Of a stretch of 64,000 bases of DNA, positions 13,604 through 42,478 are shown one piece after another. Source of the stretch: Anthoceros angustus (lineage: Eukaryota > Plantae > Anthocerotophyta). The translations under genes and the position numbers were made by a program. The DNA lies in contig MU008179.1 in NCBI GenBank assembly GCA_010909165.1, positions 682,001-746,000 of the forward strand, read 5' to 3'. The notes under the pieces are model-generated. The model saw nothing but the letters and a program-made list of their open reading frames with translations, was not told where the DNA came from and did no database searches. Numbering within the stretch: position 1 is the first letter of the stretch; each line of letters begins with the position of its first letter.

Positions 13604-16113
13604 CTACACATTCAGCTGCCACCCACGAAAGTTGAGCACTTTAATGGGCGAGCTACCATTGTTAAAGAGATAGACGCGAGCCTTGTCTTCCAGAGCAAGT
13701 GTAGGATACACGCGGGATGTGATGCTCACTCTTCCTCCTTGCGCAAATGTTTCCACGATGGAGTGATCCACCTGCACCAGCCATGGTCATCAGTCCGGAA
13801 CCCGTAAAACGATATTTGCAGTACCTACTCACCACAAAAAGCAGGCTAACGAGCGATACCAGTATTCTCAAAGACAGCTGCGTTTCCGATACTTCGGTTG
13901 GCAGGAAGCTTCCATACGCAGTCTTGTCTAGATCTGCCGCAAGAGAGGATCTGCGTAGAGGTAGAGCAAACTCAGAAAAGGAATTTGCAGTGATGGCAAG
14001 GTACTGTGGTGACAGGGCTTGGGCGAGAAGGGTCTCCAACCTGCTTTGATCGCTGCAGACCAGGACTTTCAAATCCGCAGTCTGCACCAAGCGGAAGGAC
14101 ACGGCAGTGTATTCCTGCAACGCGTGGGCTGCCAGAACCAACACCCCAAAGGATTCCAGGCCTGTTCCGGAGGCCTGGCTGCACAGCTGTTGGGCCTCCA
14201 GTGCTAAAACATCCGTGGGCACGAAGAGGCCGTTGGCTTTTGCTAGTTCTGGTATGTCGAACACTACCTCGATGTCCAGCTGCACATGGCAGGCAGCTTG
14301 ATTGTCAAACTCAGAGGAAGATGGTGGAAACGGAGGCTTCGTGTGCATTCCAGAGCAGCCAGGGCAGAACAAACCCACCTGAGGCCCGCGAAGCTTTCCG
14401 ATTTTCTTCAGTCCACCAGCTTTCAAGGTGAACTCGTTCTTGGTCACTAGGTTTTGCCGCAAAGATTCGACTTCTTCAACAGGCCACTGGATGAGATGGG
14501 TGCCTGTGCTGTTGTCCAGCCATATCTTCCTTGGAATTGCCTGAAAGCAGGGCACCGGATCGGGTTACTATTTCCCACGCGGGTTACTATCTCCCATACG
14601 TGCCTCTGGAATGGCCACCCAGGATAAACAAGGCTCACCTGCACAGATGACCATCCCTTGCTGTAATCGTCTGCCACACTATCCGAGTCGTTGGCCCAGC
14701 CCCAGAGAATACGTCTCTGCTTGTTCTGGTCGTAGAAGGTCTTGGAAGCATAGAATTTGCCATAGTCATACCGCAGCCCAAGTCCAGCGTCAATGGCGTC
14801 AACCACAGGAACAAACGTATGATTCCCTCCTTCATACGTTCCCACAGTGTAGTAGTCATGCTTGGTTATGTCCAAGCTCACTTTCAAGACATGCTTCACA
14901 GAAGGCCCATTCACTGAAGTATCCAAACCTCCGTCTCCTGTGACTGGAACAGGATAAAAGTCAGGACACTCCCACATGCCTGTGAGTTTAACGGAGTGGA
15001 GGGGATGTCCGGCTTGAGTCCAAGTGAGGAAGTCGGAGCTGGTGTAGAGGAGTGCCAACCCAGTTTTGTTCTTTGGGTCTGGTGGGTCGAAGGTCGCTGA
15101 GCCAACCAGTATCCTCCACTTCCCATCGTCTCCAATCCATCCAGTCGTCGGGTCCCTGAAGTAGGTGGCATTGATACCTGGCGGAGTGCGAATTACGGGG
15201 TTTTCCGCCACCTTCTCCCACTTGAGCAACAGCGGGTCTGTGGGATCTACTGGAACAGCTTTGCTCTGCAGCTGTGCACCATCAGAAGCGTCACCCGTGT
15301 ACAGCAGCACTGGTGTGCCATCCTTCAGGAAAGTGGCTGACCCCGACCATACTCCCTTGATGTCGTACCACTTGTCAGGCACCAGGGCAGGATCCAGAAT
15401 CCGCCAGTGTATGAGATCGGTGGACACAGCATGACCCCAAACGATGTTGCCCCAGACAACATCATAAGGATTGTACTGGTAGAACAGGTGGTAATATCCC
15501 TTATAGTACAAAGGCCCTGCCACGAATTGCACATTTCCAACCTGTCATCACCCATTCCTGCATGCAGATTTCGAATCCAAGCAATCAAGAAGGGAAAGGA
15601 AGAGCATGAGGTAACTGACTAGGCACTGACCGTTTGGATCTGCGTCCGTCCAGCCCCAACATCACAGTTCCAAACGGAAGAGTTAGTCCTCGTTACTCCA
15701 TCGCCGCATTGACAAGCATCTCACTACATCACAGCATGAAGGGGACACCAACCGTTCATCCAATTCTTCGAGGGCTGGAAATGGAAAGCTGTCCTGTAGT
15801 AATCCTCCTTAGAGGAGAACGTGTTGACAGGCTCAGCACTCTTTCCCAATGCCCAGACAGTTCCAGGCCGAGAGGCTTCCTCAAAATTCAGGTCAGACGA
15901 AGTCAAGGAAGAAACATGTCTCACAAGCTCTACAATTCCAATAATCCCCCCAGCTCCCACGACGCACAACAGGAGCAACGTCGCCGCCCATTTCCGCAAA
16001 TATGCACCTTTCTCCCCATTCCACACTGGCCTTCTTCCAGCATTAGTTCCTTCAAGGAAGGAAGGCGGCACGCCGATCACAAGAGGAGCAGACTCGTTGC
16101 TCACCACCTCCAT
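13604..16113 (-). CDS. GH32 acid invertase (beta-fructofuranosidase) with N-terminal membrane anchor
   Basis: [14 protein letters not shown]|DPN|[57 protein letters not shown]...SRVYP, stop TAG at 13604. Hydrophobic segment [20 protein letters not shown]. Confidence 0.95.
15631..15639 (-). other. 9-nt micro-exon (ATCCAAACG, encodes DPN) of the invertase
   Basis: cgcag|ATCCAAACG|gtcagt on the minus strand. Restores the WMNDPNG catalytic motif. Confidence 0.92.
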
Positions 16114-24947: not shown

Positions 24948-26437
24948 TCAGGGATGTCCTAATCGCGCGCCAGGAAACAAAAATGTCTCCGTACAGGCTT
25001 TGCTCCACTGCATTCACCACCCCGCGTGTTTCAGAGCAGGAGGAAAAGCTGGGATATGTAGGCTGTAAATTGAGAGTAAAGAGAATCAATCGCTTAGAAC
25101 AAGGGCATACCTCTGGGCCAAAGTAGGTGTCGAACAGTTTTATGGCTGGATCACGTTCAGCGTTATACTGGTCATAGGCGTCCTGTCGAGATTTTACGTA
25201 CTCCACTTGTTGTCTATCTTCGACAGGAACAGCTGTAAACAGTGCCTTGATATATTGATCCACGTATCCGACGTACACAGTGAATAACTCTCCCTTCGGA
25301 ACCTAGAACAACTTGAAGATAGAGAAAGGTTAGCTGTACCCTTGCCTGGTTGACGAGCCTAAGCCCTAATGCGATGGCCCAGAAATAGTGATGACGGACA
25401 TCAATTTCGGCAACTGCACACCTGTAAGATGGGGTCTTCAACACCTCGGTCGGATCTGTAGAAGATCAGCTGTTTTGAGAAAAATTGGTTCTCATCAAAA
25501 TGGCGAGAGGACATCCGCCCACAGTGTCGAAGGAAAGAGTTTCTTACGGGAGCCAGGGCACGAGTATGCCTATCCAGATAAGCAGTGTCTTGCTCCAGGG
25601 GAAGAAAGTCTATCACGCAGAGAATCTTACTGGCTCCGAGTGAAATGAGGTCGATGCCGAGCAAAGGCAAGTCGAATCTGGAGTGAGTTCATCCAAATGC
25701 ACAATGCAGTTCAACTGCACTTCAGTAGAGCTACATAAGACACGCAAGGTGCAAATAAGCAACAAAATTAAAGCTCCAGCACCCAAAATGGCTAACCTGG
25801 TGTCAGGATAGAGCAAGCAATTGAAGGCTTGCCCCGCTGCGCCAGCCTCGAAGTACGTGAAACGGATGCGACGCAAACGCTCCCCGCACAGGAGCCAGTT
25901 GCAGCACCGTGCTGGTTTGGAACCTTTCTTGCTTCGTTTTAACCGCAGCTCCGATGCCAAAGGGAGAAGACGCAAGCCAGGCACTCCTTCCACCAGGTTC
26001 TGCCAAATATGGTCCATATAAGGTCTGTAGACAAGATGAACGTCCTCCCCTCCCACAGAGGCTCCCATTTCGTGCCCTGGAAGAAACTGCGCACATCAAC
26101 TTAGCAACACAACCTGACGTAAGCTGGCAGGGCTACCAGGCCATGCTCAAGATTGAGCAATTCGGACGACGAGAAAAACCGTGGCAGGATCTTCCCGTAG
26201 CTCCTCGGAGATGGAGAAGCGAGACACAGAATTCCCATTGTGACAGGTGCGAGCAGCATCCCTGTCGCTGGAAGACGACGATGCTGATGCCTTCAGCCGC
26301 CAGCCATGACCATTCTTAGCAAGGTCGCGGATCCTTCCTTTCGGACTCCATGGCGAGGTTCTGCACGAAGAGGCGTCTCTGAATGCACTTGGAAAGCAGC
26401 TGCCAGAAGGTGCTGCCCGCAGTCTGCTAAGCGACAT
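24948..26437 (-). CDS. PUBS: Ferredoxin-dependent bilin reductase of the PebA lineage (phycourobilin synthase-like), plastid-targeted
   Basis: Transit-peptide-like exon 1. RRIRFTYFEAG..QAFNCLLYP|FDLPLLGIDL..CVIDFLPL…FDENQFFSKQL…QDAYDQYNAERDPAIKLFDTYFGPE|WSKACTETFLFP is PebA-like rather than HY2-like. Confidence 0.8.
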
Positions 26438-36639: not shown

Positions 36640-37000
36640 ATCCCTCGGGCTCCATCTGCTCAAGCCTTGAGCCTTGTACATTGTACATAGTACATAAGTA
36701 GCTCTGCACGACATTACAAATGTGAACGCGCATCACTTCAGGAGTGCTTGTAAAGGTTTACATGTATTTAGAAACTGAGCACTTAGCGTGGCTAAGGTTA
36801 ATATGACTACCTACGTACCTGAGGTGTTAGCACAAATCGTAACCGAAACATGCATGTTGTCCCGACTTCCTCCCTCGGTCGCGAGAGCACGGCCGTTTTT
36901 CTGGTAGCAACCAGGCTGCGGATGTCTTTCTTGGGTCGTGTAAGCGGAATGAGCGAAGTGTCTGCCAGGCCTGGCAGCCCGCGCAATCGAAGCAGCTGAC

Positions 37001-40000
37001 ATGCAATCGGAGGGAGGGGATGGCAGGGATCCGGAAGCGGCGGAGCCTGCAAGCACCGGGCTGCCGATCAGCACGCTGCACTTGCCGGGGGATGACGATT
37101 CTGATGGAGTTGGAGACTCGTTGTCGGGCAATTCCGGGGACAGGCCAGCCCGGGGTCAGGATGCAGCGGCGGAGGAGGCAGCCGAGGGTGGTGGAGAGCG
37201 GGGAGGTGTGGACATATCCGCTGCCCCGGCGATGGCAGACGGTGGAAGCGGGGAGAGCCAGGGCTCTGCTGCTACGGACTTGCCGGAAGGAGCGGTTGGG
37301 GGAAAAGACGAGGGTGGGGAGAGCAAGGGTTGGGAAGCTGGCTCTGTGACGACGGGAGGTGACGGAGTGGATGGCGAGGAACCGCCCCCGGCAGCGGTAG
37401 TGGGCGCGGATGGCGTGGCCCCGGATGAGCAGCCACAGGAGGAAACCTCCGAGTCTGGGATTCCAGAAACTGCAGCGACTGAGGAGGCGGAGCAGGTCTC
37501 CGATGGCACGCCGTCGGATGCGCCTTCTTCTGTTGAAGGCCGGCAGCAGAAGGAAGCTGCAACCACGGGCGGGGCTGGACTGGTTGGGGAGGGAGTGCTG
37601 GATCAGTCGTTGAGTGATGAGATCAAGAAACCGCCTGCGAACTCCGAGGAGTGGAGAGCTGTGGACGTACATGTGTATACTAGACGAGCGCGGACAGTGG
37701 TGGCAGCCTTGTGCTCCGTTTTGGGATTGACAAGCTTTATTTTGAGCACTGTGTTGACATACCAGATTGCGCTTCCTGGAATTCAGCATGTGTTTTTCAA
37801 GGCAAGTGCTCGGTTGACATGCCTATGACCAGTTTGACCATCTTTTTCTTGATGTCCTGATGAGCAGAGCTATGCACAGTGCTCTGCCTCGCCTGACTGG
37901 TTCAACTGCTTCCACACTTGCTGCAGAGTCTGACCATCAGCAATGCGACGGAAGGTTTCCGCACCTCGCAGGTCTTGCCTGGTTTGTACAAGAGCTGGTA
38001 CTTCTGGAACATCACAAACCCAAAAAACTATTTGAATGGGACTGAGCCTCCCAACCTGCAGCAGGTTGGATCTCCACATATGTTGAGCACATGTCTGTGT
38101 CCGGGCTTGCAAATGTAGGACTAGACGCTTTGGAGGAAATGATTGTCACTTGTTTAAGTTCTGAGTACTGAGTTTTGTTAGTGCTTCACCAATCAAGTAG
38201 CAGGTTGGTCCCTACACAATGCAGCAGGTTGTGAAGGTAACAGCAGTGAGCTTCTCCAGGCAGCAAGATGAGGTCCTCAGATCAACTGTGGTGTATGGCG
38301 TTTACGATGCTGACAAGTCCTGTGCGACCTGCTCCCTGGATGATCCGGTTACTGTTGTGAACGAAGTTTTCATGGCTACCATGGCCTCCCTTAATACTAC
38401 TGACATAGAGCTGCTGCGTACTTTTGTTCCTGGTCTCATTACTGACGCCTTGCAACACATCGAGGGTGCTGACTCTCTTTCATATTGTAGTCTTCAGGTC
38501 ATTTCCACAGTTTCCTAGCATTCTTCCAACTTCTTGTCATCTTTGTTGATCAGCGCAGAAGCAGGGACAGCTTTCAACTAACACCTCCTTCGTTTCACCT
38601 TGTAGGCTACCTTACCAAACAAGGAAAAACACCCGCTGCTGCCAAAACACAAGCTCTTCAGCAGTTTCGGGATTGTTCAGTACTGAAAGGAAAATCAATT
38701 CGAACTGTTGATCCTACTTACAAATGGCAGCAATTCCCTCCCGAGTACTGTGCCTGGGCCAAGTTCAAGAACATAAAGTTCGCTCCCCTTGTCATGAATG
38801 ATACCGAATTCCACTTTTTCATGTCCTTGGTCTTTTCAGGCCAACCTGACTCTGTGTCTAGAATTCTCAGGGCCATCAACCCTGAGCCTGGTTTCTTCCA
38901 TAACTTGAGTTGGCTCGGCTATCAGCTCTCCATTGGTATCCTGGAGTATCTAAACTACATGACAAGCAACCCTGCAAAGGGGGTGTTTACTGAGGCCGTA
39001 ATCAACAACAATGGTGGTCTCATTATCACTCGACCTGTGAAGGAACTGCTGTATGGCTATTATGACCCTTGGCTCCAGTTCATCTACGGAAACGGCAGCG
39101 ATGCAGCATGGGTGACACAGATACACAGCCAGCAAGCAGTGGAGAAGCCAACACGACCGTTTCCTGAAGCTCAGGGACGCATGGGCATCAAGACGGGAGC
39201 AGTTGACATCTCCAAGCTCTATTGGATCACCCAGCAGGGCACAGTGATGAAAACGTCCCCAGCTGCTTTCAATGCCAGAGCTGTGCAATGGGAGTATGGG
39301 AATGTCACTGTGGAAGCATCCAGTGGACTTTGTTTTGGGCCACTCAAAGTGGTAAGGGGGCAGAATGTGACCATGTGGTTGGATAACTGGTTGCGGCACG
39401 TGACACTTCAATATGTTGGAGTTGGCCACGTCCATGGCCTCGCAACATACAAATACACGTTGGATGCTTCTTCCCTCGATGCCTGTCATACTACTACTCC
39501 TCTCAGGTATGTTTGCACCTCCGTTGCGGTTCATGAATTTTGAGTTTTGAGGATGAAAGAGCTACCATCCAAACATAAATGTCATCAGCTGGGATGTTCA
39601 TTGCGTTCAGTTAATTTCAGAAAAATGTACAGACATGTTGGCACAAAAAAGGCTAGTGTCAAGAGAGGTGACAGAGTAAGTGGACAGACAGACATAGATT
39701 GATGGTCTTGCCCACGGGCTCAACAGGATTACACACACAGAAGGTCCTTGTATGTACCCCAATAGATACCGTGGTCTTATCAACATGAGCCGATTCCAGG
39801 ATGCTGTCTTTCAGACACTTCCACATTTCTATGGTGCGGACCCTCACGTTGCTGCCACTTTGGGGTACAATTCACAAGCCATGAAACCTGATGAGCGTTA
39901 TAATCTTACCATGGATATCGAGCCTTCCTTCGGCGCCAGTGTGAATCTCTCATTCTGGTTTCAGAAAGTTTTCCAGGTTAAGAGGCTGACTCTCTTGTAT

Positions 40001-41574
40001 CCAAGTCTTTGGCTCCTTCAAAGTAAAAATGCGGCACCGTTCCCAGATTCCGTCTGGATTCCTCACAGTTATTACCACATTGAAGTAAGTTTGCAAGTTG
40101 TTTCTGCTTGACAGCTGTAGTATTCTCTCTGCCGTACCTGCACCATGTAAACCATAACAATGCTTGCTGGAATCTGACAGGCCACAGCCAACAAATCTGT
40201 TTGCGATGCACTGTCTGCTGGCACATCGATCTTCTCCGCAGTTGTCTTCTTCATGATAAACTTCGTTCCATTCGTCTCTGTAGGCTGCATTGTCTGCGGT
40301 CTTCAGTGCCTGTGGCGGAGAAGGCAGATGAAACTGTGTTACATGATTTGCCTTGAGGTACACCCTGGACTGTCTTTGAAAGATCTATCCCGTTTCGAGG
40401 CTTTCAAACAAAGGAAAAGTTATCTGATCGTCGTCGGTGAGCTCATTAGGGGAAAACCGAGGATGCTGAGCCCCCCGAGCTGATAACGGCGGTTGTGATG
40501 GATCCTACGCGACTTCGAGAGTTCCTAGTTGAACAGAACCGAATAGAAGCAAGGCAGAAAGCAGAACTGAGCTGGCGACGTTTTAATGAGCATATCTCAG
40601 AACATAGCCGCGAGCATGAAAGGATCAAGCAGCAACATGCTGTACACCGAAAGTCCATCATAGAAGAGAGAGAAGCTCGAGAGAGGGCAATAGCAGCAGC
40701 TTTAGCGGAACAGGCTCGAAAGGAAAAGGAGGATTTGCTAAGAGCTCTTTCCATTGGCGAGCTTGACAAGCTGGAGCTTGGGCAACTTGAGGGCACAGGC
40801 GATGAGGGGAGCGATTTGGGGGCACGAGGAGCCTCTTTGATTGAATCGGACGAACCCTTCACAAGAGGGGTAGCGGTACCCACAGCGGTCTCAAAGCAGC
40901 CGCTGCCTACCCTGGGAGAGGAAGACTCCACTAGTCCTCGGAAAGGTGGTGCAGAGTGGTCAAGAACAGCTTCTCTATTCGAAACCAGTGGACCTGACGG
41001 ACATTCGGTGATGGAATGGTCAAGGACAGCATCCCTGATTGAAGCTTCGGGTTCAGACATCCAGGACAGCAGCGAATGGTCGAGGACATTCACCACCGTC
41101 GAAACTGAGGATTCGAGCCATGATATTATGTCACACTGGTCAAGAACAGCATCTCTCATTGAAGCTGAGCAAGGCAGACTCCAGAGGCGCTTCAAATTAG
41201 ACCAGGGAGCAAGACCATGGATGCCATCAACCACCGCCATACCTGAATCAAGGGTCGAGTTGCTGGAAGAGATGCTTGCAGTAGCTCTGACGGCAGACAT
41301 TACTCAAACAAACCCTGAACCAGATAGTGAGCCAGATCCTGAACCACATCGTGAGCCAGATCCTGAACCGCACCGTGAGCCAGATCCAGAACCACATCGT
41401 GAGCCAGACCCTGAACCGCACCGTGAGCCAGATCCTGAACCAGACCATGGACCGGACCCTGAATCAAATTCTGGACTAGATCGTGGACTACACTCCGAAC
41501 CAGATCAGGAACCGTCTGACCAGGATGGTGCTCAACAAGATGACGACAAGAAGGTGACCTTCGCAGAAGACTGA
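37001..41574 (+). CDS. CD36/scavenger receptor class B (LIMP-2-like) two-TM protein with acidic N-terminus and long repeat-bearing C-terminal tail
   Basis: TM1 VVAALCSVLGLTSFILSTVL; WYFWNITNP.NYLNG..PNLQQ|VGPY; CSLDDPVTVVN; TRPVKELLYGYYDPWL; SGLCFGP; YKYTLD; TLPHFYGADP; DIEPSFG; TM2 IFSAVVFFMINFVPFVSVGCIVCGL. The tail is joined by an inferred intron at 40358-40448. First intron is GC-AG (AAG|GCAAGT). Confidence 0.78.
41314..41465 (+). repeat. 24-bp coding repeat (EPDPEPHR)n
   Basis: gagccagatcctgaacc(a/g)ca(t/c)cgt about 5 times, in frame. Confidence 0.9.
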
Positions 41575-41958
41575 GTCACTCACAAGCTACACAGAAACCT
41601 CACATAAACGAGTGTGCCATTGCACGAGGTCACAAGATCCTCCAACAACAACACCCATCCTATGCAATCGGCCCCAACCAGGTATTTAACTGCTTCCCAA
41701 ATCTGTCCTTGTTTGTGCGTTACCAGTGACTTTCTCGTTCAGGTGCTGATTCTACCCGCCCTCATCTCCCGGTACCAGAGGACCAGCTGGAGCAGACGCT
41801 TGATACAGCATAGTGTTGCATAATGGGGAGGAAACTTCTCCGACCGCCAGTCATATGCACAGGGACCTGGACAACGAGCATGTGAGCTCAAGAGTGCTAC
41901 GTTGTGTACAAAGAGAATTGCCTTCCCCGCTTGCACAAAACGCAAGCTGCTGCCGCAA

Positions 41959-42478
41959 CTAGGACCATGTAATGAATCTGGTAGCCAGCCTTATACGGTG
42001 CGATGCCAATCTGGTAGCTTCCTGGGCAAGCGGCGCACTCACACCATCAAGTTCGAAGAGCACTTGCCCTTGCTTCACCCGAGCAACACAACCAGTGGGG
42101 TTTCCTTTCCCTTTCCCCATCCGCACCTCCGTGGGCTTGGCAGTGATGGGAATATCTGCAACCACCCGCAACCATATCTGACCGCTTCTTTTAAGCTTCC
42201 GGCTCATCACCCTCCGCGCTGCCTCAATGGCCTCGTAAGAGATCCTGCCCGGCTCGCGACTAACCAGTCCGAACTTCCCGAAAGCCAAGCGCGTGCCATC
42301 CCCCTTGATGCCATCACACCTGCCCTTGTGGACTTTGGCACGCATGATCTGCATTCAAACGCAAAAACCCCGTCACCTGCATGCCTCAAGTGAAAATTGC
42401 CCACCGCCATGCACTCAATCCCCGCATTCCTCTTACCGATTTCAGGTGCGCCAACGTCTTCGGCCCTCCCGCAGCCAT
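41959..42478 (-). CDS. RPL16: Mitochondrial-type ribosomal protein L16, nuclear-encoded, 2 exons (42478-42437, 42348-41959)
   Basis: HKGRC.GIKGDGT.LAFGKFG…GRISYEAIEAARR…QIWLRVVADIPITAKPTEVRMGKGKGNPTG..ARV…LFELDGVS, the plant mitochondrial signature. GT-AG intron. Confidence 0.9.

Follow-up and report, generated by a model that had tools for sequence, protein, structure and literature searches.

The window considered here, a 64,000-nucleotide stretch of Anthoceros angustus DNA (contig MU008179.1, positions 682,001 to 746,000), carries at positions 37001-41574 of its forward strand a nuclear gene of the CD36/LIMP-2 family (the class B scavenger receptors [SR-Bs]) in a land plant. The gene contradicts the streptophyte-wide loss of SR-Bs reported from a survey of 165 proteomes (PMC10715195; Genome Biol Evol 2023), in which SR-Bs were recorded in seven chlorophytes and in no streptophyte, the streptophyte sample consisting of Arabidopsis, Selaginella, Marchantia, Klebsormidium, and Chara, with no hornwort, Chlorokybus, or Mesostigma; the same survey ties the absence of SR-Bs to lineages without phagocytosis. 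A full-text search for hornwort, Anthoceros, streptophyte, or bryophyte together with CD36 or scavenger receptor returned nothing relevant besides this paper. The account that explains the data best, and that we consider probable, is that of a vertically retained SR-B receptor with regulated cytosolic tails and an output gated by splicing.

The gene model was obtained from a three-frame translation of 37001-41600, in which open segments of the forward strand were joined at canonical splice sites; it comprises seven exons in a single open frame of 1253 codons (about 1253 amino acids [aa]) over 37001-41574. The introns are GT-AG except for one GC-AG, the dinucleotides having been verified by script. 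Homology searches were run on each exon separately, and the joined model was used for length, hydropathy, counts of glycosylation sequons, and local tblastn only. RNA sequencing runs (X1, X2, X3, and X6 in what follows) were read as Logan contigs, for which depth is one mean per contig and strand is not readable. The features of the gene are given below, together with what supports them; L001 is a contig carrying the orthologous gene of a relative, L002 and L003 carry paralogues from the same sample (see below), and profile positions refer to the Pfam CD36 profile (PF01130), whose gathering score is 26.5 bits.

36866..37000, + strand: 5' untranslated region, minimum extent (37001 is contig position 136 in X1 record 1, so at least 135 nt lie upstream)
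37001..37801, + strand: exon 1, an acidic, low-complexity N-terminal cytosolic tail of about 229 aa and then the first transmembrane helix (TM1); a single open reading frame (ORF) from the ATG, covered by the X1 contig with 0 differences
37688-37774, + strand: TM1, aa 230-258, from hydropathy; identity to L001 in the TM region is 51%
37802..37926, + strand: intron 1, GC-AG; a joint that skips 125 nt in X1, X2, and X3
37927..38064, + strand: exon 2, start of the ectodomain, with the WYFWNITNP motif (profile 47-76, E 2.3e-4, 20.2 bits)
38201 and 38204, + strand: tandem acceptors of exon 3
38201..38465, + strand: exon 3, ending at the proximal phase-1 donor G/GTGCTG (profile 76-140, E 3.8e-6, 26.1 bits)
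38459..38536, + strand: 78-nt ultraconserved block over both intron 3 donors, 97% identical to L001 5384-5459
38466..38497, + strand: 32-nt extension of exon 3 with the distal donor (GT at 38498), giving a frameshift and a stop about 26 codons into exon 4
38606..39506, + strand: exon 4, an expanded apex region with the streptophyte Cys pair and then the CD36 core (GGLIITR, ELLYGYYDP, G..FGP; profile 137-304, E 1.4e-13, 50.6 bits)
39727..40084, + strand: exon 5, the C-terminal part of the CD36 domain (LPHFYGADP, DIEPSFG; profile 313-396, E 2.3e-8, 33.4 bits)
40181..40357, + strand: exon 6, the second transmembrane helix (TM2, about nt 40223-40306, from hydropathy) and a juxtamembrane Cys/Arg cluster, CGLQCLWRRRQMKLCYMIC, kept in L001 and L002
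40450..41574, + strand: exon 7, the C-terminal cytosolic tail of 374 aa, to the stop codon; a homologous tail ORF follows TM2 in L001, L002, and L003
40471..40650, + strand: membrane-proximal conserved tail segment PPEL.TAVV...WRRFNE...QHA.HR, from the L001 alignment; the WRRF core is also in the L002 tail
40825..41179, + strand: five tail repeats, [ED]-W-[SA]-R-T-[AT]-S-L-[IF]-E, from a regular-expression search and alignment
41312..41463, + strand: 24-nt tandem repeat coding for (EPDPEPHR)n, from Tandem Repeats Finder
41548..41562, + strand: C-terminal K-K-V-T-F, which is R-R-V-T-F in L001

Searched exon by exon, the protein matches a single Pfam family, CD36, in exons 2-5, colinearly and over profile positions 47-396 of 463, and exon 4 and exon 5 each pass the gathering score alone. 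A first-pass annotation, made from the DNA sequence without database searches, had proposed a CD36-family gene, and these matches confirm it: the Pfam profile had been set beforehand as the test, and it returned significant matches for the exons of the spliced ectodomain, whose proposed bounds (37927-40084) are exact exon ends. All of the ordered motifs that it had listed are present in the exon translations (WYFWNITNP...PNLQQ/VGPY, LDDPVTVVN, VKELLYGYYDP, GLCFGP, TLPHFYGAD, and DIEPSFG). A profile built from the exon 4 region and its relatives, searched against PDB sequences, matched only human CD36 (5lgd, 3.6e-16) and LIMP-2/SCARB2 (7.5e-15), and the nearest clusters in the ESM Atlas were all CD36. 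On these comparisons we regard membership in the CD36/SR-B family as very nearly certain, for a protein that is very divergent, its family being visible to profiles only.

Two hydrophobic helices flank the Pfam-matched exons, as had been noted at first pass (Kyte-Doolittle maxima: 2.17 for aa 230-258, 2.42 for aa ~835-862), and enclose an ectodomain of about 570 aa. The stretch between the helices holds all 13 N-X-S/T sequons; the approximately 620 aa of tails have none, and Arg-rich (R/K) clusters stand on the tail side of both helices. The predicted topology is accordingly N-in/C-in with a glycosylated loop, and because two helices surround the CD36 domain, with the sequons so placed and with Arg/Lys flanks, the gene, as judged from its sequence, falls within the operational definition of an SR-B used in PMC10715195. 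Mammalian LIMP-2/SCARB2, CD36, and SR-BI share this Pfam family, the two-pass topology, and a heavily glycosylated ectodomain, and four blocks are common to mammalian CD36/LIMP-2 and the hornwort protein (TR.V.ELL.GY.DP, G.D...F.P, LPHF...ADP, and DIEP.TG). The hornwort ectodomain is the longer one, at about 570 aa versus about 400 aa (391-423) in the solved LIMP-2 and CD36 ectodomain chains, and it contains seven Cys. Short cytosolic tails, which are typical of the mammalian and other animal members without being a formal criterion for the family, are not found here; the tails of the hornwort protein run to hundreds of residues. The protein would be a two-pass glycoprotein in the plasma membrane or an endomembrane, with the glycosylated ectodomain toward the outside or the lumen, and, by analogy with CD36, SR-BI, and LIMP-2, a hydrophobic tunnel in that ectodomain would carry hydrophobic molecules, lipids among them, from the extracytosolic side to the bilayer or back. 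Lipid transport, which the first-pass annotation had also put forward, draws only on this family analogy, and for a lipid-tunnel function we see the balance as even.

The gene is transcribed and spliced. A 3164-nt contig in X1 has 0 differences from the window and is spliced at introns 1 (the GC-AG intron), 3, 5, and 6 (intron 6 on a small contig), so it derives from RNA. X2 comes from a relative about 93% alike to the window, and in it a single contig extends from a point inside intron 2 (38105) to exon 7, with introns 3, 5, and 6 removed; X2 record 6 joins 38064 to CAGGTTGG, the first letter of which is 38201. The joint of 40084 to 40181 (intron 5) was found in both X1 and X2, and that of 39506 to 39727 (intron 4) in X3 only. 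A further joint in X3 (38633-38722) was held to be unreliable because of its noncanonical ends, its depth of 2, and one side of 30.

Relatives of the gene are few. A word-index search with exon 4 returned one relative, P0001 (54% identical over exon 4), which sits on the 9-kb Logan contig L001; there the orthologue is complete, and it matches each of the seven exons in unchanged order. The same kind of search with the Chlorokybus protein introduced below, or with an alignment of six CD36 sequences, retrieved nothing but the query itself. In an exhaustive HMMER search of the exon 4 profile against 1.84 billion representative proteins there were 10 matches at E <= 0.001. The top three (P0001, P0002, and P0003) are three paralogues from one sample (SRR33208241), the fourth is from Chlorokybus atmophyticus (9e-11; the best after the paralogues), and Mesostigma viride is among the ten (1.4e-4); the others are a protein from a Hodarchaeales metagenome-assembled genome (MAG), a ciliate protein, a 4359-aa repeat protein (P0008), and two metagenome proteins. 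PF01130 was found in 8/8 scanned relatives (all but P0001 and P0008), and in P0001 by precomputed annotation. Contigs L002 (1473-4802) and L003 (1605-4850) of sample SRR33208241 carry the two further paralogues with matching exon order and long C tails (in L003 one local match spans exons 4-5), so that the relative represented by this sample has a three-gene SR-B family.

The closest named relatives in the exhaustive search are Chlorokybus Chrsp104S01203 (789 aa) and Mesostigma Mv11326 (695 aa), which have the same order of helix, CD36 domain, and helix as the hornwort protein and share with it the apex expansion and the motifs A-[LV]-Q-Q-[WF]..C and P-E-[YF]-C-A. Chlorokybus aligns over all of exon 4, including the approximately 115-aa apex expansion outside Pfam coverage, and the Cys pair of that expansion is common to the streptophyte sequences only. 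Identity to the algal proteins is 21-26%; their C tails are about 55 aa, versus about 390 aa in the hornwort protein, and neither W-S-R-T-A-S-L-I-E repeats nor a terminal [KR][KR]VTF was seen in them. No paper was found that discusses either algal protein as an SR-B. Chlorophyte SR-Bs (Volvox, Chlamydomonas, Gonium, Chloropicon, and others) carry PF01130 between two helices or in partial form (Table S2 of PMC10715195); none was matched at E <= 0.001 with the hornwort exon 4 profile, and they are thus more distant than Chlorokybus. Among other non-animals, Dictyostelium likewise has a three-gene SR-B family (LmpA, LmpB, and LmpC) of proteins larger than the animal ones, and these are the sole non-metazoan SR-Bs with tested functions, in phagocytosis and phagolysosome biogenesis (cited in PMC10715195). 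Because land plants do not phagocytose, that role cannot be transferred.

A maximum-likelihood tree of nine rows was rooted on (ciliate, (metagenome protein, Hodarchaeales protein)), and its ingroup consists of (Chlorokybus, Mesostigma) at 90/90 and (L003, (L002, (window, L001))) at 75/82 (ultrafast bootstrap / SH-like approximate likelihood-ratio test [SH-aLRT]). This topology matches the species tree and so favors vertical retention, on thin sampling. We think it likely, from these sequence comparisons, that the gene descends vertically from the streptophyte ancestor, with losses in several other streptophyte lines. Of the two origins that the first-pass annotation had offered, retention or acquisition, retention is therefore the better fit, Chlorokybus being the best match after the paralogues and Mesostigma being among the ten. 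The attribution to seed-free plants in general was too broad: the gene is established for the window plant and for the relative of SRR33208241, and the survey recorded none in Marchantia or Selaginella. The first-pass remark that the family is not known from flowering plants agrees with the absence of SR-Bs from Arabidopsis in the same survey.

Horizontal acquisition would instead have a hornwort ancestor take the gene from an alga or protist, with duplication to three copies afterward. The patchy distribution speaks for it, since the survey found no SR-B in Klebsormidium, Chara, Marchantia, Selaginella, or Arabidopsis, and many losses must then be assumed under vertical descent. We nevertheless find it unlikely, given that the best relative past the paralogues, among 1.84 billion representatives, is an early streptophyte alga with a second one in the same short set of matches; that the hornwort-type genes fall outside the Chlorokybus and Mesostigma pair, as the species tree predicts, rather than nesting by one donor; that the six spliceosomal introns occupy positions common to anciently diverged paralogues; and that the G+C content (61% in the exon 1 region and 47-51% in the remaining gene) is near the range of the window.

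The Hodarchaeales match deserves separate mention. Protein P0005 (1628 aa; L004:10001-14887), from a Candidatus Hodarchaeales (Asgard archaeon) MAG, contains a CD36 domain (PF01130, E 2.1e-89) between N- and C-terminal hydrophobic helices, with four repeated modules upstream of the domain. Its contig, of 35.8 kb, has a compact archaeal gene set that includes TFIIB/TFB, HMG-CoA reductase, and NadA. A full-text literature search for Asgard together with CD36 found no relevant paper, and PMC10715195 treats the SR-B family as eukaryotic.

The long cytosolic tails (about 229 aa at the N terminus and about 390 aa at the C terminus) are an unusual feature of the hornwort protein. The acidic, low-complexity N tail shares one exon with TM1, and the C tail, which a spliced contig connects to TM2, is kept in the orthologue and the paralogues. 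The tails diverge faster than the remainder (33-38% identity, window versus L001), with their frames still open. The five tail repeats have the same number and order in L001, and the C tails of L002 and L003 contain related R-x-x-S-hydrophobic-hydrophobic-x-E sites (as well as an internal R-V-A-F in L002). The R-T-A-S core of the repeats is that of the nitrate-reductase 14-3-3 site; the terminal [KR][KR]V.F resembles the PP1-docking RVxF motif, and the Cys cluster on the cytosolic side of TM2 recalls the palmitoylation sites of CD36. The residues of the repeats at P-5 (hydrophobic) and P-3 (basic) relative to Ser follow the canonical CDPK/SnRK1 recognition pattern (PMC2782308), from which we infer candidate basophilic Ser-kinase-type (CDPK-SnRK1) sites. 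The long tails would then be regulated docking platforms, with phospho-control of trafficking or signaling. An acidic dileucine after TM2 (E-P-P-E-L-I) was rejected as a candidate motif because it is not conserved in L001, L002, or L003, and a search of the ESM Atlas with the C tail gave no usable match. The length of the (EPDPEPHR)n repeat varies among runs (6 nt missing at 41302, 12 nt extra at 41431, and a 61-nt skip in X2).

Attachment of the C tail to the receptor could itself be an artifact of the gene model, in which case intron 6 would stay unspliced, the stop codon at 40481-40483 would end the CD36 gene, and the ORF at 40498-41574 would be a separate, adjacent gene. Long SR-B tails are often model fusions, as PMC10715195 cautions; a Met stands at the same tail position in the window and in L001; and the joint of 40357 to 40450 has a depth of only 3.2 in X1. 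In addition, X3 record 14 runs unspliced through exon 6, intron 6, and exon 7 (40236-41391) at a depth of 54, compared with 2-5 for the upstream exons. For this record the candidate explanations are an internal start, antisense RNA or read-through that originates at the convergent uL16 gene described below, and an assembly effect. We consider such a fusion improbable, because the X2 contig, at a depth of 23.8, contains the exon 6 to exon 7 joint in frame and with GT-AG ends, and because in L001, L002, and L003 the TM2 exon, with the same ...C-I-E donor, is followed by a tail ORF whose start is homologous (E-x-[VI]-[TV]-A-[VE]-V...WRRF); the high depth of the X1 and X6 contigs is confounded by the opposite-strand uL16 gene that they also contain.

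Compared with L001, the gene is under purifying selection (exons 3, 4, and 5 have ratios of nonsynonymous to synonymous substitution rates [dN/dS] of 0.23, 0.28, and 0.07, respectively, at dS > 1). Identity between the two genes is about 72% in coding DNA, with saturation at synonymous sites (proportion of synonymous differences [pS] 0.58-0.74), versus 97% in the 78-nt block at 38459-38536, which includes both intron 3 donors and 38 nt past the distal one. The distal joint (38497 to 38606, with 108 nt skipped) is the only intron 3 joint seen, in X1, X2, and X3, and it breaks the frame; in L001 the distal donor adds 30 nt with an in-frame TAG, so that a premature stop results there too. A phase-1 GT stands at the homologous position of the proximal donor in all four genes (the window, L001, L002, and L003), which identifies the donor at 38466 as the ancestral coding junction. 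The block was not found in the paralogues L002 and L003. RNA folding of the block was no better than that of shuffles (z 0.49), and with no stable fold a hairpin is unlikely to be the cause of its conservation. Two donors 32 nt apart, a premature stop from the distal one, and extreme conservation are among the marks of regulated unproductive splicing, in which the isoform with the stop is degraded by nonsense-mediated decay (NMD) and responds to a regulator. As far as its sequence goes, the block is best read as a putative regulated switch, with one 5' splice site productive and the other not. The proximal of two weak 5' splice sites would lead to the full protein and the distal one to a premature stop, and the choice between them would gate the output of the gene.

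The same transcripts could be the nonproductive remnants of a decaying or silenced gene, at a locus that no longer yields full-length protein; each assembled transcript does contain a premature stop (from the intron 3 distal donor and from retention of introns 2 and 4). We think this quite improbable, somewhat more so than acquisition or fusion. All seven exons are open, and dN/dS is 0.07-0.28 in a comparison in which synonymous sites are saturated; both donors lie in an extremely constrained block, which decay would not have preserved, and the proximal one is intact and conserved. Rare isoforms, moreover, drop out of contigs, and RNA of low abundance contains many unspliced forms.

Several observations weigh against the retained, tail-regulated, splice-gated receptor that we favor. 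With respect to the receptor itself, single-sequence phmmer searches with exons 4 and 5 against PDB chains gave no CD36 or LIMP-2 match. CD36 Lys164 is not conserved, nor, it appears, are most of the animal disulfide cysteines (profile alignments, by eye); where CD36 has C243, C272, and C333, the hornwort protein has residues other than Cys (by eye, against the CD36 and LIMP-2 alignments). AlphaFold models were of low confidence both for exon 4 alone (mean predicted local distance difference test [pLDDT] 47.8) and for a Chlorokybus proxy (P0004:100-789; pLDDT 50.1). When this poor proxy model was submitted to Foldseek, in line with the comparison with LIMP-2 proposed at first pass, matches at E <= 0.001 were only to LIMP-2, SCARB2, and CD36, but TM-scores were just 0.15-0.24, and with models of such low confidence this is weak support, the fold and the tunnel being predictions from family membership. 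As to output, introns 2 and 4 are retained in the X1 and X2 contigs, a full-length coding mRNA was not observed among the assembled RNA contigs, and the productive junction (38465 to 38606, from donor 38466) is absent from all four RNA data sets; the first-pass description of the gene as intact is correct for its open frame over seven exons and goes too far in this respect. As to origin, the nine-row tree has no chlorophyte, animal, or amoebozoan sequences and tests vertical descent weakly, and vertical descent implies four to six independent losses. The tail motifs, finally, are pattern matches only.

A transcribed and selected land-plant SR-B, together with bona fide SR-Bs in two early streptophyte algae, moves the losses to inside Streptophyta and makes them multiple. 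It also offers a walled, nonphagocytic lineage in which to probe the ancestral role of the CD36 tunnel outside animals and amoebae. The hornwort lineage is genetically tractable, and motif-bearing long tails and an ultraconserved splice switch provide concrete, testable handles. A more far-reaching proposal would be that hornworts kept three SR-Bs that other sampled land plants lost, as lipid- or microbe-sensing signaling receptors with kinase/14-3-3-type tails and a phosphatase-docking end, splice-switched in, for example, gametes or colonization by Nostoc or fungi. We offer it as speculation that is doubtful at present; the roles in sperm, spores, or symbiont interaction suggested by the first-pass annotation find no support in the evidence here.

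The surroundings of the gene are those of plant nuclear DNA, the same 64-kb window containing plant-type genes (CRR42-like, a bilin reductase fragment, PP2C, GH32, DnaJ, and uL16, as well as a weak DUF26 match), of which the following were placed.

14447-15529, - strand: GH32 invertase/fructosidase-type exon
25616-26068, - strand: ferredoxin-dependent bilin reductase fragment
41962-42354, - strand: bacterial-type uL16, presumably organelle-targeted (Pfam Ribosomal_L16, E 1.2e-39)
52000-52506, + strand: CRR42-like gene (chloroplast NDH assembly)

Hornworts host many associates. That the gene belongs to an associated alga or protist and was mis-assembled into plant sequence, CD36 genes being common in protists, oomycetes, and ciliates (PMC10715195), has a negligible probability, because it lies in the middle of the window with plant-type genes on both sides and with introns, G+C content, and spacing like those of its neighbors, because one RNA contig is identical to the window and runs under four organism labels contain near-identical copies, and because the orthologue of the relative has the same introns.

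The uL16 gene is convergent with the CD36 gene and lies about 390 nt past its stop codon. An internal promoter, considered on account of a 5- to 50-fold higher depth of exon 7, was withdrawn for X1 and X6, in which the contigs include this gene. Because RNA contigs in X1 and X6 join uL16 with exon 7, the two genes probably overlap at their 3' ends.

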